A stretch of 64,000 bases of DNA, from assembly GCA_965285935.1 (NCBI GenBank), contig OZ260661.1:138818001-138882000 (forward strand), read 5' to 3'. A program made the translations under genes and the position numbers. Under the pieces are notes generated by a model. It ran no database searches. It worked only from the letters and a program-made list of their open reading frames with translations, and was not told where the DNA came from. This document shows positions 1-62,000 of the stretch, in pieces (positions within the stretch are counted from its first letter, which is position 1; each line of letters begins with the position of its first letter). Source of the stretch: Ophelia neglecta. Lineage: Eukaryota.

Positions 1-39
1 AGGCAAAGTACCCATAATGCTTGGTACTTAAACTCACTT

Positions 40-361
40 GGGCTGTTTTTTTTTTTTACGTTGCTTTCTACATTTATATGGTCATATCGCCACGGTGTCT
101 ACTTGTAACAGTTGGCTCAATGCAATCTCTATAGTGGCCTGCCTCACTTGAGTACCTGCCGTAGACACCAGTCAGTGAACCCCACCCAGTCACATTATAC
201 TGACACCGGGTTGACCAGTCCTGATACTACCCCGAAATGCCGGGCGCCTGGCAGGAGAGCTATTAGTACCTCAATGTACGTCTTGGGTTTGACGCGATCG
301 GGATTTGAACACAGATCTTCCACTTGCGAGGCGGACACCTTAACCACTCGGCCACGCCACC
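40..361 (-). mobile_element. Full-length tRNA-derived SINE (Meta-domain type)
   Basis: Minus-strand head has A box TGGCCGAGTGG and B box GTTCAAATCC. Central block GGACTGGTCAACCCGGTGTCAGTATAATGTGACTGGGTGG resembles the MetaSINE core; A-rich tail. 11-bp TSD TAAACTCACTT at 29-39 and 362-372. A second copy lies at 27105-27522. Confidence 0.88.
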
Positions 362-1908
362 TAAACTCACTTCATGATAGTACACTATTAATCGAAGGCC
401 GAGTGGTTTTGAGTGGTTGTGGGTTGGGGGTGTGGTGGAAAGTGGTGGAAGGAGGTGAAGGAGCAGGTTCTTTTAAAGGGAGGACTAAGGAGGGGGAGAC
501 TGGGTGATAGTAATGGGTACTCATACACCGGCCTACCATGTACAGGTATTTATTTTGGATCTTTCGGGACTAAATTCTGAATGACATTGGGGAAAGATTA
601 TTAGTTTCAAGCAAACAAGTATGAGACGTGATGTCTTATGCAGCATATTTATAAAAACTTACCCTGCATGCCGAAAAGTCAATCTTCGATTGAACGGGGT
701 GTTCAGCCTGTAAGTATTAGACAAGGGTTTAAGAAAATATGATGTATTGCGTATTTTCTAAAAATGCCGACCAGGTGTAAAATTATGAATTCTTAAACAT
801 CTAATTTATTAAGGTAGTCTTGGATAGCCTATTGTCAACATAAAATTTCAGATTGTCACTTTTTATTAAAATTCATGTCTATAAAGTTATTATTGTAGTA
901 TCCATTTACCCTATCATCTTTTACCCAAAATTAGAATATTTACGTTATTTACGTTCTACACAATAGTGAAAAATGAAAAACCTTTAGAGACACAAAAGAG
1001 ACTTATTTCATAATAAATTCAAACATGCAGTAAATACCAAACTGAACTGGCAGAAGTGGAGACATAAAATAATCATTTTACTTTTAGAATTTTAAAAATA
1101 TCATTAAAGGTAGGCCTAATTAAACGCCAATCGAGACATATTAAAATTGAACATGCCAGCGCACCTACAAGATATGTCGGCTACATCTTGATATTTCCTA
1201 ACTTAAGGAATAATGTAAACAAGCCTGCGCCAGTATAAATATTATGTAGAGTGATAACTCTGTTAGAATCCACTGGTGTAATAATTGTTTTGTGACTATA
1301 TGGTTTATATCCTACTTATTCAAATGTACGATCTGCCGTGTAAGAAGGTGGTGCTTTTAAAAAAAGATTTTGTTTTGGGATTGTTTCTAGGCGCTTCATT
1401 TCTTTCCAGGGCATTTTGTTTTTCTGATAAAAATGTTAATTTTACAGTAGTCAACAAAACAACTATGAGCTCCCGGCTTATCGCGTTTTTCTTTTTCTTG
1501 CGTCACAATGAAGTGTGGATTCCAAAAGTTTAGCTTTTCAAATATTAAGAAGCAGATTCATCAAAGAAGCGTGAACAATATGGAAGGTAGAACAGGGTTT
1601 TTGACCACATAAAATATACGGACAAATTGTGCAGACAATAATTACATGCAATTATTTATGACCATGTTACTAGAAATGATAACACAGTGGAACTACTAAC
1701 GTTAGACTAAGATGTCTGTTTCATCTCATTCACAGGGAACACTATTTCTCAATAGAATATTTAATGTAGATTTCAACAAAGACATTTTGCTTAACGTTGA
1801 TGGCGGTTTTGTCAAAACATTCAGATCGTGTGACATTGTTGATTATCATTAGGTAGGAACCTCACTCACATCGACCTGTGAGAGTTAATATGGAAAGCAT
1901 CTATCATA

Positions 1909-3078
1909 TTACAGACACAGCGAACGAGGTAATTGTTCGTGTGTTACGCCACTCACACCCCTCGCGCCTACATCCCCCATCTGATCTCTTAAATGCATAT
2001 AATTAACACGTACTGGAGTATACAAAAAGACCTGATCCGACATATAGTTGGTAGTTTGAAAAAGTACCTGATCACCATTTTCCTCGATTCCGATCTTCTT
2101 AGGCTTGAAAACCTGCTGCAGTGATAGCATTTGGCCGCGAAAAGGGCGTATGCAGGTCAACTCTATAGCCTTTTCGAAATCTTTAATGAGAAGATTCTGT
2201 TTTCAAGAAAATGCCTAAATCTTATACGACCGTTTCTAACGCTCTTAATACCATAAAGAAGCTTATGTCAAATATATTATAAACTGTTAAAGCAAATGGT
2301 TGTTTACGAACCTATGGGGTATTTGAATATTAGCAAGGCCATCGATAGTCTTTGACTAAAGTCGATATTCTCTATGGGAATGCTGACAAGGCGTGAGACA
2401 AAGTCTAGTAGATCTGAGCCTTCACTTCCGGGAGGTATATTTGTTACCAGAAGCTTTTGGTTATCTGGTACATGTGCAAAGCTGACTGCAGGAGCAAGCA
2501 TTTCAACTTGAACGTTATTCCCCTTGGGCTTCTGGCGGACGCTTGCCACTCTTCTGGCAACTGAGTACAGAAATATAATTTGAAAATATAAATACTAATT
2601 ATATTCATCGTGTTGCTAATTATCAATGTTGACAAAATTGATGAAAAAATTAATATAAACACGGCAATCTAGGATCTCTGTAGTTACCTTCGACAGACTT
2701 GTACGTTATGGTCACACAGTGGTTTTTCATTACATCGTCGCAATAGAAATCCTCGATTGAATCACCTCCAGACCTGTGTTCGCTCTCGAACCAAAGCTGC
2801 AGGTAGTCCATGTCCATATCTGTTGGAATACCAGTTACCACTACCGCCAGACTTTGTCTTTGGTCAGCATAGTCTAGAAATAATGTTATTATCATCTCAT
2901 GAGAAAAAAAAGGTTTATGATTACTATACAATAATAAACCATTCAACTACATATATTTACACTTTCAACATTACCTTTACAGAACAAACGAAATTAAAGA
3001 ACGATCAGAAACAAAAAACTAAAGTTAGCAATACCGTTGTTAAATTTGCTCACTTCCTTTTCTTGTTTCTCTCGGGGC
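1909..3078 (-). CDS. Second (duplicated) RRM block: linker, RRM1', RRM2' and truncated RRM3'
   Basis: SLAVVVTGIPTDMDMDYLQLWFESEHRSGGD..ITYKSVE parallels SLAVVVTDIPPEIDTDYLELWFESKNRSGGD..ITYKSVE of block 1. Exon sizes are 44/186/249 versus 44/183/258 with identical phases. Confidence 0.82.
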
Positions 3079-6000
3079 CTTTGACGGAAATACAATTAAA
3101 ACATATCGTAGCAAATCTCTTTTTCGTATTGCAAAATTCACAATATTAATAGGCCAAACACTCTACCCATTTAATGCTACAATGTAAAGTGTAAACAAAT
3201 ATTCATCTTACACTAATGAACACAAGAAAAGCGATAGAGGAATTACTGTAAATATATTACTGAAAACAACACAAAGAATATTTTACCTCTCCTGAGTATT
3301 ATCATATTTAGATGGAGCTTCTAAAGGACATTCGCCTTTATAGGTCTGAAGAACGTATTCAGTATGACTGCATGAAACTCCCAAGCTGTCATAAAATATT
3401 GAGAGTCGCACTTGACGTCCCTTAATGGTGTGACGCCTTTCCAAAACGTTTTGGAAAACTGTGAAAGAAATTGTGTTTATTCGCTTGGTTTTATAAATGT
3501 CGCACAGTCAGGTTTCTGGGTATAATTTGGTATATGCGCAATGTTGGTTACTTATCCTCGCGGGAATCAATGAGTGGATAACTTTAATAATAGTAATTGA
3601 CGAAAACAAATAGGTCACACATATTTTCAAAGTATTAAATGCAAGATCTAAAAGGTCCAAAGGTATAAAACATGTTTAGAAGATTATTAGATCTAAGGTA
3701 AATTTGAGTTTTGTACAGGCTATAAATAAGGCATTTTTCTAAGGTATATCATTCATATACAATATCAAACATTTAAACCACCAGACAAAAGATCTAATTC
3801 AATTCGGTAAAATACGATGCTATGAAACTAGCTTTGAAAGCTACTTGTGATGTTGGGCTCCTTTACGAAGTTGTATAATTAAAAAATACATAAATGTAAA
3901 AAAACACGTGGTTAACAAATATTCTTATGTATAACTTAAATTTTCGAAGCCTTTTGTGCAAGAGAAATCGGAGGGATTCGTGTGAATGCAATAATCAGTC
4001 TTGCTTGCTCAAACACTAAAGGCGTGCTTGGTACGTATGTTCAATGAAATATTAAACTGTATCGCACCCTTCCAGGAAGTGTTTGAATGTGTCTCAAACT
4101 GGCGACTTTTTGGCAATATGATAATCGTAGAAAATCCAAACGTTAAATATTTCATTTCAATTTTCTGATCCGGTGTCGGTATGAACATAACAGAAGACCA
4201 AGATATTTTCCTTGAACCTACCCTCGGACTGCTCAAAATGGATTAAAGCATAGTCCTCATCAAGATGGGGATCATATTTCACAATTCTTCCTCCTCCATT
4301 TCTCCCGCTTTCGAAGTAGTAAATAACTAGATCTTCGTCCAGGCCTTTGACGCCATTTACTTGGACAGCCTTTGACTTCGAAACAGGCTGAATTGACAGT
4401 ATCTTTCCCCGATACGGTCGCAACTGGTAGGACCTTGCCATCATCATGAATTCTGTACATCAAAGAAAATATAAGATACAATACAGGAAACATTACATTA
4501 CATAAAACTAAATTTACTATAATCCACCCGGTGGTCGGAAATTAATTGTGGTATTTTTTCTTAGGGTAAATATGAGTTTCTCGGTTAACAGACACTGTAT
4601 TATAACTATGCGACAATCCAGTTGAATGTCTCCATACTCTAATTTTATAATAACCTTTACATGTATTTGAATAAAACTTCTAGTCCTGTAATTTCCATCT
4701 CAATTGGCAGTTTATTTTATTCTTAGAACTGACTTCGTTTTGTCCCAAGCGTCCACTCGTTATTTGGCAAAACGTACCAGTTAGTAATGTGTTGAGTGAC
4801 GTTTGGCTAAAACATGAACATGGGAACGGAAAGAAAAAAACAGTGGATTCCCGGTAGACAAAACCAAATCATTGACAAAGAAGAGGGCACCAAATCGGTC
4901 CGAAATTATCAGGTACTAGCGGCACATAAAAATATTAACTTCCAGCTCAACATTAAACAAAATAAAACATTTGAAAACAAAAGTTGACTTCACTGGAGAT
5001 GCACACCGCAACGCTACCCCATGAAACTCAAGAATGCTCACCAGGGGTGCAATTAGTTTATGCATAGCCAGATCTTTTTGTACTTCCGTGATATAGAATG
5101 ACCTTGAGAATTGTTTGCTCGACAACTTGTTAGCCAAATAAAAATTGGTGAGTTAATTAATTGGATTAATTTTCAGATAATAAAGAACGGAAAGGACGTA
5201 ATTTTTTTTTAAACTACACAGTTTATGGGAATTCACCCCTAAAGACATGCTAATGTTTATTCCTTACCATAGTTTAAGTTCATTCAACATTTCGGAAACA
5301 ATTTTTAATGGATAAACACTCTTTATTATATTTACAAACCTATTGGGCATTTAAATTTCACCAAGACTTTGTCGGGATTCATTCCACGCACAAGGCATTC
5401 AATGGGGCACGTTTGGTAGCGGACGAGGAAGTGTTGTAAATGTTGAATACTGCTTCCAATGGGTACGTTTGTAACAAGAATCAATCTGTCATCAATACAA
5501 CCCTCCACGTGTGTAACAGGGGGATCAGTGGTAAGCAATGCAACTTTAATTTGGATTCCTTTTGGGCACTGGACCGTTGCAGCCACTCGCTCTGCGACTG
5601 AATGGATAAAGGAAACGCAAGGGCAATAAGAAAAGCTGTCAACAAATATAAACCCTATGAGCTGTGACGGGGTATTGCTGTTTTGTTTTATTGCTGTAAT
5701 GAAGTTAAATATAACTGGCAATAATATATAGAAGTAACGTTCAACGCACGAGAAAATGGCTGTTATTTCACGGTAGAATTATTGCTAGTATAACGGAAAA
5801 GTAATGTTGTAAAGCAAGACCAAAAATCTTATTAAGGCACCAGATACCTTAACTATGAGACCATAAAAGTTACCTTCGACAGATTTGTAGGTTATAGCGA
5901 CAGAGTTGTTTATAGTAATTTCGTCACTGTAGAAATCCTCCATAACGTCGCCTCCTGATCTATTTTTACTTTCAAACCACAGTTCTAGGTAGTCTGTGTC

Positions 6001-7718
6001 TATTTCTGGCGGAATATCGGTAACCACGACGGCTAAACTTCGTGTGCTAGAAATGTCTGCAATTAAACCCATGTCAAAATAACATTAAATATTCTCAGCT
6101 AACTATCCGCTTTCTTATCAATATTTCCCAAGAGGCACTATCTGTTAATAATAACTCTTATATATTGAAACTAAAATGCATTGGTATTACACAGGTTGTA
6201 TACATGTATTCTAGTGGTTACATAACTTAAGGGCTACTAATATTAATTATACCAATAAGCGAAACCGTAGCATCCAATACATAACCAACAGAAATAATTT
6301 TTACCTTACCTGCTTCTATACTAATATCTTCAAACTGTATATCCTGATTAAACCTAACGTCAAATGACACAGGAATAAAATAGATAATGTTTAGTACGCA
6401 TATGTACAACGAAAAGAGATGTGGGTTCTTAGAAGAAATGGGTGAGTTAATCAAAATTGACTGTACCTACCGCTTTAAAATATCATCAAATACGGGTCTG
6501 CTTGTTGGAACAAATGATAGACAACTCTCCATGACATTCTCCGTATCTTGTAACTTATCGCGAAGGGCACTGTACGTCTCAGATTGCTCGGGTAAATGAC
6601 GTTCACTGAGCAGATCTGCGATGCAGCGTTTTAAATCGTTTGATGAACGTGTATCTGACTTGAACTCCTTTTGAAATGGATATTCTAGGTCAGGATTCAG
6701 AAGACAGAATAAAATGCATCCATAAGCCCACACATCAATCCTTTTAAGATCAGAAAGACTCGCTGTTTTCAAATAGCCGAGAATTGTCTCTGGAGCTTGG
6801 AATGGAATGGTTCCTCTATCAACTCGAGAGGTCTGAGACGCCAGGGCCGTGCTTGTCTGGATGTTGTATGATCTGGCTTCTCCAAAATCTGTTATCTTGC
6901 AGTTGATGATGGTATCATCATTTACAATCCCATCTTTTGTATTGCCCACAAGGATATTTGATGGCTTCAGGTCTCGATGAGCGATATTGTTTTCGTGAAG
7001 GTACGAGAGTCCTTGGGCAGTATTCTTTGCAATAAGTCTTATTATGTCATACTCTTCTTCAAATGACACCACTGCATCACATTCATGCAACATCTTTAAA
7101 AATTTAGCGAGGTTTGTTACTTTGACCTGTATGCTATATGGATTAAAATCAAATGAGACATATTCCAACATAAGAGCAAATGGTTCCGCAACAGCTCCCA
7201 ATAAAGACACCACATTGGGATGAGAGAGTTCTGAAAGAACTTTCAGCTCTTTCACAAAACGTTCAAAAAACTCTCCTTCTTCTCCAGTTATGATATTTTT
7301 CAGAACGCACTTCTTGGCTGAAAATGGGTGCTATACTTTACAAATGATATGGTGAAAGATATAATATTTAGGGTTGAAAAAATGCCATGCTCATCTATAC
7401 GGGTTCATACATACTATGTTCTGTATTATACGTGCCGGGTATATATAACCGTGGTGTAAAGTGCTCACCTGTATCTGATTGAAATGACACTAGTTCGACC
7501 TTGCCATAGGCACCAGTTCCGATGAACTCTTCAATATTAAGCTCATCTAGTCTCCAGATCTTTAGTCCAATATCTTGCAAAGCTTTCGCGTGAGATTCAA
7601 GTCTTCCTTGAATTGCTTTAGACTTGAGTTTTATTTTCTTCTTTTCCATTTCTGCAATAAAAAATGAAGCTGCTGTTACAGAAGGTGAAGCATTCAAGGA
7701 GCGGTTGCGACTGGCCAT
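1909..7718 (-). CDS. Protein kinase fused to five PARP14/PARP10-type RRM-like domains (~911 aa, 11 coding exons)
   Basis: Exons (minus): 7718-7469, 7317-6471, 6353-6310, 6056-5874, 5597-5340, 4452-4222, 3458-3287, 3078-3035, 2873-2688, 2560-2312, 2180-1909. All introns are GT-AG with compatible phases; total 2736 nt with no internal stop. The last exon is provisional (alternative donor CAG|gtactt near 2067). Confidence 0.8.
3287..6353 (-). CDS. First RRM block (linker plus RRM1-RRM3, PARP14 N-terminal-like) of the kinase-RRM gene
   Basis: AVVVTDIP..DYLELWFESKNRSGG; DRLILVTNVP..VLVKFKCPI; KAVQVNGV..DLVIYYFESGRNGGGRI..ALIHFEQSEVFQNVL..VRLSIFYDSLG. These match the (Y/F)FE-x-x-R-(S/N)GGG and YxSLG signatures of PARP14/PARP10/NMI-type RRM-like domains. 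Confidence 0.85.
6471..7718 (-). CDS. Kinase-domain exons of the kinase-RRM gene
   Basis: IGTGAYGKV (G-loop), CVLK (VAIK lysine), FVKE (alphaC Glu), HPNVV, LMLEY, HRDLKPSN, DFG, RGTIPFQAPE, DVWAYG and subdomain XI Arg (PTSRP) are all present. Phase-1 intron 7468-7318 joins SDT-A-KKCVLK. Confidence 0.93.
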
Positions 7719-8635
7719 TCTTGTAAACAGCTAAGGAATGTAGCTTTTTGTTTTGGAATTCGAGGTTTGCCCCCGTAGACTTTTTTCACCAGCCAAGAAA
7801 ATTTGATTTTGAACATGTGACACTCTTCAAATGCGGCAAATTTATAGTAAATGTTTATAGCTGGTGCCTGAAAATATCTGAAAAAGTTACAAAGTTACAA
7901 CGGTATCAAGCTTTATTAATATGCGTCCATTTTAGATTTGTTTAAGAAACGGCTTTAAGAAAAGGCGAATTTACTAGTTTCCTTATGCGGCTTCAGCGGA
8001 CGACTTTCTGTCTAGAGAGGGGCTAGTAACAGGGTTATGTAGAGGGTTTAACTTGTGTAAGCAATATTCTAAGTGCAAGAACATGCCTTGTAGATCCCGG
8101 CGAGATCTTTGCAACTCTGATCTCACCTGCAGAGCACATCGAGACTAAATAACTGTCTGCTGGCACGGCCATATTTGTCACTGGTGTGCACATCCCATTT
8201 GCGGTTGTTTTGCAGTTTCACTCCCAAGGATTATGCATTCGCTCACGTGCCCTATTGGCTGAGCGTCCAGGCAGAGTGGCTCTGGCGATGATTTATTCTT
8301 TGTAAATGAAATAATTATTTCTTTCGACTTTTCAGCTTTTAGTCTCATATTATTTTCGTTTGATCAATTAAGGATTTCTCCGCCTTAAGTGGAATTATAG
8401 ACCCTTACTGTACTGATGATACAAGCAACCGCCATTCGCTTGACCGCCATTTGTATACACTAAATACTCGTATATTGAAACCATGAGATGTTGATTCAAC
8501 TCACGCATTTGTCCAATAAACAAATCATACATGTTTGAGCTCTATGACTCTGCGATAATAAAAGCATAATCGGTGAACGATCGCCGTTACAGGGAGAATG
8601 CATATCGGATGAATCAGTAGTTGAGTCCACATTAG

Positions 8636-8798
8636 NNNNNNNNNNNNNNNNNNNNNNNNNNNNNNNNNNNNNNNNNNNNNNNNNNNNNNNNNNNNNNNNN
8701 NNNNNNNNNNNNNNNNNNNNNNNNNNNNNNNNNNNNNNNNNNNNNNNNNNNNNNNNNNNNNNNNNNNNNNNNNNNNNNNNNNNNNNNNNNNNNNNNNN
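8636..8798. other. Assembly gap (163 N)
   Basis: Run of n characters. Confidence 0.99.
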
Positions 8799-10689
8799 AT
8801 TTACATACATGGGCTTTAGAATTGTAAGTGCCCCTGTTGGATAATTTCGGAAGTAGGCACGGAGGCTTATCAGACAATCATGATACAGAACGAGACTTGC
8901 CCTCACTTGACCACGAAAAAAGGAACAGCATATAGTAGAATTTATGTCAAGAAAGGCCTACTTCTTTAATTCATATAGTTGAAAAAGAAAATTAGTGTAC
9001 TATAATATAAATAATTATATTAATACAATATGAATTATAATATAATAAAATAACACCTTTAATGATGCTAGATGTGCCATCATAACAATGATGATAGTAA
9101 TCAAAATTATACAAATAATGAAAATAATTATGCTTTAATACGTTTGATTAACGGATTTTGGATTAAAAGCATAGTCGTGGGAGCTTGGAGGGCGGGGATT
9201 TTCAGTCACTTCCATGACCTCCGCCTCCTCCTAGCCTCGGCACCTCCACCACATTTAACCAATGGCCTATTCACATGGCGTAAATATAGAATAAATGTCT
9301 ATAGTTTATACACTGAATGAAGGGGTAATGTAATGTTTAGCGTAGGGTAAGGTTGAGGGACAGTGTTAATAGGGAAGTGTTAGGATCTATAAGGTTAGGC
9401 TAAGGGTGAGAAAGGTTAGTAGAGAAAATGTTTATCATTTTTCTCGGATTATCATTAATCTAGAACAACATGGGTGGGAATAGGTTTCGGGTTTACTAAA
9501 TGCCTTTTTGTGTGTGTAGAGATGAGTTCGACTGTATTCACCTGCACAGTGGCATGTTATATCATATAGAAACTTTCCTTCAAATCTAATGATGCAGCCC
9601 TCTACAGGCCAGAGGTTTGCTTCACTTTAAATATGTACCTTATATTGCAAGGCAAAAGTTCTCTGTTAATGTTCAAAATTCATACGCCAACTTAATTATG
9701 AAGATGCCCTTGTCTTTTGTTCTTGAACTCAATTCCAACTCCCTCCACTCGTTATATCTTAAAACAAATGTTTTCCCCGAAAATGAAAGTTGTGGGAAAA
9801 TACCCTGAATACCAAGAAACCTGAGAATAGATTACTCTGGTTTTTCACAATGGGTAGAGCATTGGTATTTTTTTCATTTCAACAGATCCCAAAGCCGAAT
9901 GGGGGTCTGCTGCCAAAGGTCTCAAAAAGGGCATGCATTTTCCGCAATTTGCAATAAAGCCATATTTACTGGGAGAAGAAACTGTTTTGGGCTCTTTTAT
10001 CGCCTTTAACTCTACAGACACAAAAAGGCATTTAGCAAACACAAACCCCCACCATTTACCGCAAAATCGGTAATGGTAAGATTAACCCCCAACCCCTCTG
10101 ATTGCTGAGCTATAGCCAAAACAAATGGCAGCGGCGGAGAACATGGCCCAATGCATATCCCCCACTTTTTTCAAGAAAATGATGGGGGCAAAAAGATATT
10201 TATCACTGTATAAAATGAACCTTTTGATACCTTCTGATGCTTGGAAATGGTCAAAATGCCAAAATAGCAAAGCATTTCAGAAAAAAGGACCCTTAGCTAG
10301 TGATTTTTTGTGGAAACGGACTTATAGCTAGGGAAAATCCCCCCCCCCCCCAAACGACCCTTCCTGGCGGCACAAAGCTATAGAAAAATATAGTATGATG
10401 AAATATGCCAAATGAGAGCGGAAATTAGTGGATTTCTCACATTAATCCATGTCAAAGATATACATTTTCATGTCATTTTCGCTACGCTAATCTTCTAAGG
10501 TAAAGACACTAAGGCTGACACCCAACCACAAGGTCGTTATCTGCGGTTTACGGTATCGGGAAAATAAGCTCGGTGGGAAAATGTTCATTAGGCCTATAGG
10601 TCAATAGTTATCTGAGCGGATAAGTGGCAGAATACTTCAAATGTGGATACAAGTATGAAATTTCTCACAGTTGTCAAATCCAGCAAGAT

Positions 10690-59056: not shown

Positions 59057-62000
59057 TTATGAAAATGTGATATGGTATTCAGGATAAGCCTGGGTATCAT
59101 TAAATATCACATACATTGATGGGTTACTAACATTATCCACAACCGAGTCATACAGGATTGCTCCAGATTTCACTGGAGGAACTTTCATTCCACCAGACCC
59201 AGTAGCAATGTCTCCAGTCAGCACTTTACACATATAAATGTGCTTATGGCCGGTTTTAGGATCAGGACGAGAATAGGTACTGGAACACGAGTAGGATGCG
59301 TTTTTGGCAAAGTACACTCCGTTACCAAGGGCTACGGCTGTAAACGAAAATTTTTAAGTTCAGCAACTGGTTAATGATTGAACAGTATCACAGTCTACTC
59401 TAAAACAATCCAATAGCTACAACATTAAGCTTTCTTCTTTAAGGAGATTTGATCTTTTGTTTTTAAACAAGAAACAATTCAAAATGATAAATCATAAAGA
59501 AATAATCCCGATTGTCTGCATTAAAATGAAGACAGTTGCCATATATGCGTAGCCCCATTTTTCAGTTTCTGAAACCTGATGACTTAAAACAATACAAGAT
59601 TGCAGGCAATTATTCTTTCTATATAATAGTTTAAAAATAACACTGCACCAATTGGGTGTTTATTGTAAAATTGCTATTACTTAGCATTTGGAAGAAAGAG
59701 TTTCCAAATGCCATTATAGTTCTCATACAAGGTATCAATTATAGCAAGTACCATTTTTTCCACAGTAACTCCTATTGAAACCATATCTGTTGATGCTTTC
59801 TAAAGTGTCGGCACTGGTGCCATGCCAGAGGATATTCTCGACACTTCCCGTTGGGTTGGCTTTCATCATACTGTCCCTGTGCACAGCGTACTGCTGGAAC
59901 AAGCTGGTGTTCTGAACCCTCTCGATCTGTTTGATAAAATGTTATTTTGCCATATACTGTAATGGTAAAATGTTCATGGGGGATTAAATTTACACCTTTG
60001 GAAAAAAGACAATTGGACATTTTTTGTTTCTTGGCAAGAATTATGCATGCGATTATGATTTTCATGAGTTTAAATTTAAGACTGATTGTATTGGTTCCAA
60101 AAGTCTCGAATTTGTCGAGAATATAAAACTTCCATTAAACTACTTGTTAGCAAATAGTTATCAATAGATATAACAAAATGCCTTTTATCGGGAATGCACA
60201 ATAATGAATACTGTAATAGTGGAAATGATTGCAGGGGGAAATTTTTGCGAATTTGAAAAGTTTGCATTTTTAGGGACCTTAATTGTGTTAAGCTTCGACA
60301 AATCAGGTATTGCAGTACTATGTACATAAAACCAGATCATAAAAATTGCATTTTTAAATTTGCATTTGTGTTTATTTTTTTTGCGCAAAGTTTTGGTTTA
60401 AATATTGCTTTACATAATTTTATGTTTAGAGGTTAGAATAAAATCTGTGCACCTTCATCAAATAAACCAATATTAAACATTGACATCAGGAAAGAAAAGA
60501 TGGCATATCTCTATAAAAGGAATTGTATCTGCATTTACTAGGTTGAATAGGGTTTTTTTCCAGCCAGTTGCATGACCATGATACTACTTCACAAACATGA
60601 CAATGTTGAGTAGCAGTATAATCTAATCCCATTCGTCAAGCTGAGCAGGTAGACCAGAACAATTCAAATATATCCAAAATAAGCTGGCTGTACAATGTAA
60701 GACCCTTTTACTTACGATTCACAACTATTTCTATTATTGCTCATTCGGACATATTTATTTTAAGAAAGGGTTATTACAAAATACTAAAGCAAGGCAATTA
60801 ATAATGGTCACATGGCTTAGTATACAAAGAACTTTTGTCATTTGCAATAATTGATAAAACATTTAGGATTATACCAGTAAATCTGATTCCAAAAACCTGC
60901 TGTAAACAGGGGCAAAGAAATAGGCTATTTCCATGTTTTAATGTACTAGGCTCTTTTGTGTTCTCCGACCATGCAGCACATCTCCGTATTAACCCATTTA
61001 CTAAAACTTTTGTCATATCAGACTTATGGCATTGACTTTTACCTTCTTGTAGCTTAAGTTCTATATGTCAAGTGGACAAACTGACAACATACATTATCTT
61101 GGCCTTAACACCAATCAATTGCATAAGCATTTTACTCTTTAACCTACCCTTATCTAGAGTTTTTTATTACTGGCTTATGGTTTTTAAGCTAGACTGTACT
61201 TTAAAGCATGTAAATGATATGTAAGAGGATACCTCGCCTTAAACAATTGAAAGTATGATCGATTGACGTGCTTACATTTATTTTTATTATTTTGGGTGGC
61301 TGCTTTACTTACACTAATTATGTTGTTAATGTGCCCCCCAGCAGTAGCCTTCAATTTATTCTCCACATCTTGGTACTCAGCAGAACTTGTCTGAAGAGCC
61401 ACCAGTTCAAAATGCTTGTTTGGGTCGACTGTGGTCCAGTTTGGCGGTACTTCCACACCACCTCCTGCAATGTAAAAAAACAACGCTGATGTAATAGTAT
61501 TGGCCTCCACAACTGAAATTGATTTTATTTTATTTTGTTTTTGTTGAAAGAAGTATATATATTAACAGTTGCATTGATATAGGGCTTAATGATGTAAATG
61601 ATTATAGCATGTTGTACACTGTGTGATTTATACTATATACCATTATTGTGGCAAAAAGGGCAAAGTACATTAATGAAATGACTTGAAAGAATAAATATAT
61701 AAATCTTAATAAACTAGTTAATTAATATCTGTACCAAAAACTTTACTTGGTTATATAAACTTAATATGTAGTGGTTATTATACTGATTATACAATCTGAC
61801 AATACGACTGCATTGTCATATGTTAGATAATTTAAGCTGACCCATACTAGCAGTACCACATGATGTTAAATTGCAATAAAGCTATCGATTTATTACCATC
61901 TGTTTGGTGCCAGAGGACATGGTCCAATACATATCCCCCCAAATATTTCTCCGAAAAAGGGGGGGGGGGGCAAGCTTAACCTTATTTCCAATATTGATTT

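Follow-up and report, generated by a model that had tools for sequence, protein, structure and literature searches.

Does a protein kinase of Ophelia neglecta share one polypeptide with an array of PARP14-type RRM domains, and if so, what kind of protein would this be? The question is raised by a locus on the minus strand, positions 7718 to 1909, of a 64,000-nt stretch of DNA (GenBank assembly GCA_965285935.1, contig OZ260661.1, positions 138,818,001 to 138,882,000), which we call the window. A first-pass annotation, made from the letters alone, had placed the kinase and the RRM array in one frame, and comparison of paralogous loci now supports this. We consider it likely that the locus is an intact member of a large lineage-specific family, in which an N-terminal kinase precedes two RRM-triplet units and the product acts in innate-immunity-type, RIPK2-like signalling.

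The gene model from 7718 to 1909 consists of 11 exons, whose AG/GT borders and compatible phases were all confirmed by a script check of the splice sites. Their lengths total 2718 nt, or 905 codons plus a TAA; the earlier count of GT-AG exons and the stop-free frame thus hold, with 905 codons in place of about 911. Stop codons are absent from each of the 11 single-exon translations and from the ten junction codons, which are in order GCC, CGG, GAC, GTC, GAA, GTT, AGG, GAC, GTT, and GAG. Exon 1 (E1, 7469-7718) starts with the ATG at 7718 and encodes a variable N-terminus and the kinase glycine loop GTGAYG, ending in a phase-1 donor. Exon 2 (E2, 6471-7317) encodes the remaining kinase domain and ends in a phase-2 donor (cg/gtag). 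Taken by itself, exon 2 scores 121.8 bits against the Pfam Pkinase model (PF00069; cut-off 31.7, E 4.4e-35). The catalytic set is complete, as had been claimed: the glycine loop in exon 1, then the beta3 lysine in CVLK, HRDLKPSN, DFG, and APE.

How the two halves are joined depends on exon 3 (E3, 6310-6353), a 44-nt bridging exon that leads from phase 2 to phase 1 and encodes RFNQDIQFEDISIEA. Because the kinase donor is in phase 2 and the acceptor of the first RRM exon in phase 1, a bridging exon must have a length of 2 mod 3. In all ten loci compared, this exon lies 114-315 nt past the kinase donor, is exactly 44 nt long with AG/GT borders and an open frame, and encodes a related peptide, in proteins that differ by more than 30%. 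In two further loci, L029 and L025, enumeration of the bridging exon gave many in-frame chains, none of them unique. A second exon of the same kind, exon 7b (E7b, 3035-3078; phase 2 to 1, peptide PREKQEKEVSKFNN), lies within the array. Ten exons were evident at first, with a phase break between E7 and E8, and enumeration of AG...GT mini-exons yielded the 44-nt exon 3078-3035, which restores the frame. It carries out a G that completes the codon GAC, exactly as the exon at 6353-6310 does, and it is kept in six of seven long-form paralogues, 143-188 nt before the E8-like exon. The 44-nt linker exon of the first-pass annotation therefore exists, but it is not a kinase-specific adaptor, because it is part of the RRM repeat unit and occurs twice.

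These comparisons bear directly on whether the locus might be two adjacent genes, a kinase with the TAG at 6469-6467 as its stop and, behind it, an independent gene of RRMs only, the two having been duplicated as a pair. The in-frame TAG is real and overlaps the GT of the exon 2 donor, as the first-pass annotation had noticed, and in the window copy, position 6072 also offers an ATG that is in frame with exon 4. This ATG is not a general feature of the family: in 6 of 12 loci, the stretch that runs from the stop ahead of the first RRM exon up to that exon holds no in-frame ATG, and the 44-nt exon contains no conserved ATG. An untranslated exon, moreover, need not stay 44 nt long and open in ten of ten loci, nor would one expect the same exon type inside the array, between E7 and E8. 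The kinase-to-RRM distance is 0.33-1.9 kb across the fetched loci and about 330-740 nt in most, which leaves scant room for a terminator and a promoter. We therefore regard two separate genes as improbable.

The RRM half was assigned by profile and homology searches run exon by exon, each RRM being spread over two exons. Exon 4 (E4, 5874-6056) encodes beta1-alpha1-beta2-beta3 of RRM1 with the motif FESKNRSGG. Exon 5 (E5, 5340-5597) completes RRM1 (alpha2-beta4) and opens RRM2 (beta1-beta3), and exon 6 (E6, 4222-4452) holds alpha2-beta4 of RRM2 and beta1-beta3 of RRM3, with YFESGRNGGG and an RNP1-like DYALIHF. Exon 7 (E7, 3287-3458), which is also present in paralogues, contributes alpha2-beta4 of RRM3 (YDSLG) and an unconserved linker before a phase-2 donor. 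After exon 7b has opened the second repeat unit, exon 8 (E8, 2688-2873) encodes beta1-beta3 of RRM4 (FESEHRSGG) and is a paralogue of exon 4 at 66% identity, and exon 9 (E9, 2312-2560), a paralogue of exon 5 at 36% identity, encodes alpha2-beta4 of RRM4 and beta1-beta3 of RRM5. The conserved part of exon 10 (E10, 2068-2162) supplies alpha2-beta4 of RRM5 (IRPFRGQMLSLQQV) and a beta1-like stub, and it ends at a conserved AG/GT in phase 0. The array thus holds five complete RRMs, as the first-pass annotation had proposed, and a truncated sixth, laid out as a 44-nt exon with RRM1, RRM2, and RRM3, then a 44-nt exon with RRM4, RRM5, and the stub. In every RRM the interruption falls at one place: past beta3, a phase-1 intron stands at a Gly codon (the sequence ...EG). 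RRM_PARP14_3 (PF23085) matches exons 4, 6, and 8 above its curated cut-off of 24 bits (27.2, 26.3, and 24.5 bits), each of these being a half-domain exon. Exon 7 matches positions 55-80 of this model (E 0.012), which is its C-terminal third. In the Pfam scan, exons 5 and 9 (RRM2 and RRM5) gave weak generic RRM-like matches.

The same arrangement recurs across the organism's own genome, of which 762 Mb were searched. The kinase exon gave 70 matches, including one at 100% identity that lies 57,253 bp away. Intact kinase copies with 61-68% identity number at least 43 and are spread over C1, C5, and C9, and a further group stands at 36-44%. Searches with exons 4, 5, and 6 returned 87, 85, and 64 matches, situated a few hundred bases to a few kb downstream of the same kinase exons on the same strand; all 85 exon 5 matches adjoin kinase exons. 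Cross-referenced, the searches show that 42 of the 43 intact kinases with at least 61% identity have an E4-like exon behind them on their own strand, at a distance of 0.35-2.1 kb. The full order E1, kinase, E4, E5, E6, E7, E8, E9, E10 is found in six paralogous loci (L016, L018, L019, L020, L027, and L028), and a one-unit form in three (L015, L017, and L021). Where an E1-like exon was detected, it carries G.G..G in 15 of 16 paralogous loci, and the other motifs are retained almost throughout (HRD 23/23, DFG 22/23, APE 23/23), with the beta3 Lys present in all RRM-linked copies. In a kinase tree whose root is unsure and whose outgroups are long-branched, one supported split (97/94) unites the 17 RRM-linked kinases of this genome.

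Selection on the family points in the same direction. The kinase has a median dN/dS of 0.18, and for E4, E5, E6, E8, and E9 the medians are 0.18, 0.36, 0.24, 0.18, and 0.38, values that are approximate given a dS of about 0.8-1.1. Judged by these ratios, both halves, kinase and RRMs, are under purifying selection; the first-pass annotation had raised neutral evolution, and the medians of 0.18-0.38 among own-genome paralogues speak for purifying selection instead. They also bear on the suspicion that the window copy is a decaying or unexpressed pseudogene, or an assembly duplicate without a function of its own. Such a history would suit the near-identical copy 57,253 bp away, the unconserved C-terminal tail, and the few family members that are broken, for example at C5:115617080 and C9:17613263. 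It would not suit 11 open exons with intact splice sites and catalytic motifs, a dN/dS of 0.12-0.56 for the window copy against its paralogues, or a sequence confirmed by independent genomic contigs. We rejected the pseudogene reading on the intact frames and the dN/dS values, and consider it very improbable indeed. The copy itself (L014, C1:138760748-138769382) duplicates the whole gene and matches window 1-8635 with 99.94% DNA identity over 8.6 kb (five mismatches, no gaps, every exon the same). Either a unit of about 57 kb, with a PARP14-like and a kinase-RRM gene, was very recently duplicated as a segment, or the copy is an assembly duplicate.

Outside this genome, relatives of the kinase are distant. 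An exhaustive search with the kinase exon brought up no relative above 48% identity; the named ones belong to a nemertean, a sea cucumber, and cnidarians, where their labels read 'ULK1-like', 'STY46', or uncharacterised. None of the 211 database proteins related to the kinase in word-based and exhaustive searches matches any RRM exon, a weak negative in a database where eukaryotic multi-exon proteins are poorly represented. Ten long kinase relatives have no recognised C-terminal domain, and a homologous-protein search with exon 6 gave no candidates. A 70.8-kb ENA contig from another organism (L029) does carry, colinear and on the same strand, an E1-like exon, a kinase at 47% identity, exons like E4, E5, and E6, and after these Macro and ankyrin frames. 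From its order of kinase and RRM exons it follows that the linkage predates the expansion in the O. neglecta genome, and in the tree its kinase is adjacent to the split of the 17. No RRM exons were found on two contigs of other species (L037 and L038) whose kinases are 39-42% identical.

The age of the fusion also bears on where it came from. The first-pass annotation had set the gene among PARP14-like genes, and Macro, PARP, and RRM matches around the locus agree: the local layout is a PARP14-like gene, a nest of retrotransposons, the kinase-RRM gene, and a PARP14-like gene, repeated 57 kb further on. The upstream PARP14-like gene has its PARP catalytic exon at 59204-59353 on the minus strand (C1:138877204-138877353; PF00644, 28.3 bits), and its Macro and RRM exons lie beyond the right end of the window. 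A recent, local effector swap with this neighbor as donor had been suggested. The RRM exons of the neighbors are 36-44% identical to those of the window gene, whereas family members share 55-81%, and the fusion is present in 42 of 43 paralogues on three chromosomes as well as in L029. These identity levels and the age of the fusion led us to rule out the neighboring PARP14-like gene as a recent donor; on this comparison the fusion is old, predates the expansion of the family, and was not donated by the neighbor.

What such kinases carry elsewhere in the genome is seen in the more distant paralogues. Kinases at 36-44% identity precede CARD exons in L022 (3561-3899, +), L024 (5878-6309, -), and L026 (3932-4228, +), with CARD matches of 4e-11, 5e-3, and 1e-5, respectively. 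Judged from the exon content of these sister kinases, which carry CARD, it is the recruiting domain that has been swapped when the gene is viewed from the kinase side. The window gene itself has no CARD, death domain, or RHIM in the Pfam scan of its exons. Paralogues of this identity range lie at C7, C17, C5:5.2 Mb, and C5:16.9 Mb, which gives this genome several copies of a RIPK2-like kinase-CARD family.

RIPK2 consists of an N-terminal kinase plus a CARD at the C-terminus (PMC9573974). The O. neglecta gene is like it in having an N-terminal Ser/Thr-type kinase and a C-terminal recruiting module, and in that its nearest non-RRM kinase paralogues carry CARD. It differs in that its kinase sequence is unassignable to the RIPK family and in that its module is an RRM array and not a death-fold domain. 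The best solved-structure relatives of the kinase are CaMKK2, CDK2/7, and ULK1, at about 1e-13; no RIPK is among the 60 listed, and a CARD-linked paralogue found nothing at 1e-12 among solved structures. The resemblance to RIPK2 is thus one of design and not of proven membership.

On this layout we can outline how the protein might work. The C-terminal recruiting or sensing module would be the RRM array, in the place where a RIPK2-type layout has its CARD. The array may bind a ligand, either single-stranded nucleic acid or a partner encoded by the surrounding PARP14/DTX3L-like genes. Binding would cluster the kinase domains, leading to trans-autophosphorylation and to a signal that is passed on. 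Activation by clustering is here modeled on the CARD-CARD recruitment of RIPK2 and on the dsRNA binding of PKR. The kinase-RRM family is probably an innate-immunity signalling family; its immune context consists of the sister kinases with CARD exons and of a cluster of Macro, PARP, KH, and RING-DTC genes on C1, in which the locus lies.

A bolder version would make the family, with its more than 40 copies, cytosolic nucleic-acid-sensing kinases: a RIPK2-like kinase with an RRM array for a CARD, detecting viral or aberrant RNA or single-stranded DNA in concert with the neighboring PARP14/DTX3L-like ADP-ribosylation and ubiquitin machinery. We find this doubtful as a whole. The first-pass annotation had likened the protein loosely to PKR (EIF2AK2), which has two dsRNA-binding domains and a kinase. 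By analogy only, both proteins may be seen as putting nucleic-acid-binding-type domains and a kinase on one polypeptide, with a conceivable ligand-driven clustering. The order is reversed in the window gene, where the kinase comes first, the domains are RRMs and not dsRBDs, and there is no sequence relationship to the eIF2-alpha kinases: the Pfam scan matched dsRBD in no exon, and no eIF2-alpha kinase is among the best solved-structure matches to the kinase.

Several points weigh against an intact, RIPK2-like signalling kinase with an RRM array. No RNA runs for the organism are on record, and the three runs that hold the locus (X1-X3) are genomic contigs that pass through the introns and show no spliced joints. 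A message left unspliced at the exon 2 donor would end the kinase at the in-frame TAG. Membership of the RIPK family by sequence was rejected, the solved-structure matches being distant and unspecific. The sensing step assigned to the RRMs is one that we purely infer, as PARP14's own RRMs have no demonstrated ligand (PMC13224862, PMC10450202). In the kinase tree, the kinase of L025 groups with the CARD-linked kinases (99/94), so that the RRM linkage may have two origins or may be ancestral. To these are added the approximate nature of the dN/dS values given above and the 3' end of the window copy, which is doubtful and is taken up below.

The runs gave some observations of their own. One contig of run X3 has T>A at window positions 2836 and 2860, both within exon 8. 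Read depth is about doubled over the exon 4 and exon 8 bins in X1 and X2, and less so in X3; a doubled depth is what would be expected if contigs of close paralogues or alleles map there too.

The 3' end deserves a closer look, for it decides how long the protein is. The eight paralogous E10-like frames compared are conserved only up to a shared ...(Q/K) followed by GT, at 2068/2067 in the window, and are unrelated after it, with stops at varying distances. The tail of the last exon (1909-2067), up to the TAA at 1911-1909, is therefore either a real but unconserved C-terminal tail or intron; these last 159 nt of the model have no similarity to any paralogue. Read as a conserved phase-0 donor, the AG/GT at 2068/2067 suggests at least one further exon. 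Because this site is conserved and the tail is not, the TAA is probably not the true end of the protein, and of the last exon in the first-pass annotation the part up to 2068 stands while its end at the TAA is doubtful. Searches with tblastx and blastn against the paralogues found no conserved exon within 9 kb past the 2068 donor in the window copy. Coding sequence resumes 6.8 kb further on, with the first RRM exon of a PARP14-like gene.

That exon raises another possibility, namely that the cassette is the 5' part of a longer gene, and that the 2068 donor splices into this downstream PARP14-like gene with its RRM, KH, Macro, and PARP domains. This RRM exon lacks an in-frame ATG, and the best of its acceptors is in phase 0. 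Phase-1 acceptors are present as well, and a possible 29-nt ATG mini-exon just upstream could give the downstream gene a start of its own. The conserved AG/GT with unrelated sequence beyond it would fit a longer gene; the absence of anything conserved within 9 kb past the donor would not. No Macro domain was matched between 1909 and 7718, the nearest on the same strand being at C1:138800208, 19.4 kb downstream, in the next gene. Nor does the gene match the PARP catalytic domain (PF00644), the nearest being those of the upstream gene, given above, and of the downstream gene (C1:138788561).

Other loci lend the longer gene some weight. Past the kinase-RRM cassettes at C1:139.5 Mb comes a large exon with KH_DTX3L and Macro, and then RING and Deltex-C. 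The KH-Macro exons have 787-979 codons, and a RING plus Deltex C-terminal frame comes after them; these frames lie at 5840-8776 (-) in L030 and at 2095-4455 and 5312-6097 (both +) in L031. The KH-Macro exon opens at a conserved phase-0 acceptor, and its first 50 codons contain no Met, which fits a phase-0 donor; a kinase-RRM-KH-Macro(-RING-DTC) protein is possible there. L025 (C1:137157001-137167000) carries on one strand a Pkinase match, a 292-codon unassigned frame, RRM_PARP14_3, KH_PARP14_1, KH_PARP14_2, and Macro. Together with a PARP catalytic match at C1:137149218-137149394, which comes last in the order, this array is colinear over 16 kb, and in L029, too, Macro comes directly after the RRM exons. 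Since the cassette precedes KH-Macro(-PARP) exons in some paralogues, the kinase may be an addition to a PARP14-like body and not a replacement for its ADP-ribosyltransferase. Against this stand the clusters on C5 and C9, where most of the family is located and no Macro or PARP exon is near, and for the window copy we consider a longer gene unlikely, if worth keeping in view. L025 resembles a full PARP14-like gene headed by a kinase, and its kinase is without a plain DFG.

In C5 and C9 paralogues, three same-strand fn3 exons (8e-11 to 2e-5) come 1.2-3.2 kb after the E10-like exon, in L019 at 7094-7414, 7952-8182, and 8767-9057, and likewise in L016, L027, and L028. They are phase 1-1 exons with GTAAAT donors, and their phase-1 borders would need an intermediate exon after a phase-0 donor. 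They are further exons of the C5 and C9 genes or belong to a co-duplicated neighbor.

Around the window gene, retrotransposons fill much of the 51 kb that separate it from the upstream PARP14-like gene. Two near-identical Gypsy-type LTR retrotransposons lie on the plus strand at 29589-55000, with gag, protease, RT, RNase H, and integrase frames, the first copy at about 34.4-38.5 kb and 42.6-43.0 kb, the second at about 45.0-48.6 kb and 52.9-54.0 kb. Both are broken by LINE-like elements, at 39.0-42.1 kb and 49.2-52.5 kb, that have frames for endonuclease and RT, and GC rises to 0.45-0.55. About 0.9 kb upstream of the start codon, a run of 163 N (8636-8798) marks an assembly gap or masked sequence. 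On a larger scale, C1 136.2-140.5 Mb contains dozens of Macro exons, most of the genome's 83 matches, and also exons for PARP catalytic, KH, and RING-DTC domains as well as the kinase-RRM genes of C1; the whole is a very large gene cluster of the macro-PARP/Deltex type.

It is in this company that the likeness to PARP14 and its relatives (PARP10, DTX3L/PARP9) is best seen. PARP14 and PARP10 have three N-terminal RRMs (PMC10450202, PMC13224862). The RRMs of the window gene match the model of the third RRM of PARP14 and come as a triplet unit, the gene sits among PARP14-like and DTX3L-like genes, and some of its paralogues continue into KH and Macro exons. Unlike PARP14, the kinase-RRM gene has no Macro, WWE, or ART domain, has an N-terminal kinase, and has duplicated its RRM triplet to give five RRMs. 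In a broad survey of PARP architectures, the partners include macro, WWE, RRM, U-box, and other domains, and no kinase (PMC4245714). We found no published description of a kinase paired with PARP14-type RRMs, and no kinase partner in the PARP14 literature consulted. The view of the first-pass annotation that no such family had been described is thus supported, as far as this literature and the 211 kinase relatives go.

The pairing of a kinase with PARP14-type RRMs would belong with the modular signalling proteins of innate immunity that arise by domain shuffling. PARP14, PARP10, and DTX3L share such RRMs, whose ligand and role are obscure (PMC13224862, PMC10450202), and a family that links them to a kinase, an output that is easily assayed, offers a natural experiment. 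The same RRM triplet, set on another output in dozens of copies, points to the array as a portable targeting or sensing module, and many sequence variants are available for identifying its binding target. The family also joins two antiviral toolkits that are usually kept separate, RIPK-like kinase-CARD signalling and macro-PARP/Deltex ADP-ribosylation. It represents a large expansion of the immune type by tandem duplication, whose genes automatic annotation would probably split or call generic kinases. If the nucleic-acid-sensing reading were true, it would amount to an independent invention of PKR-like logic in a marine invertebrate and would give a first functional handle on what PARP14-type RRMs recognise.

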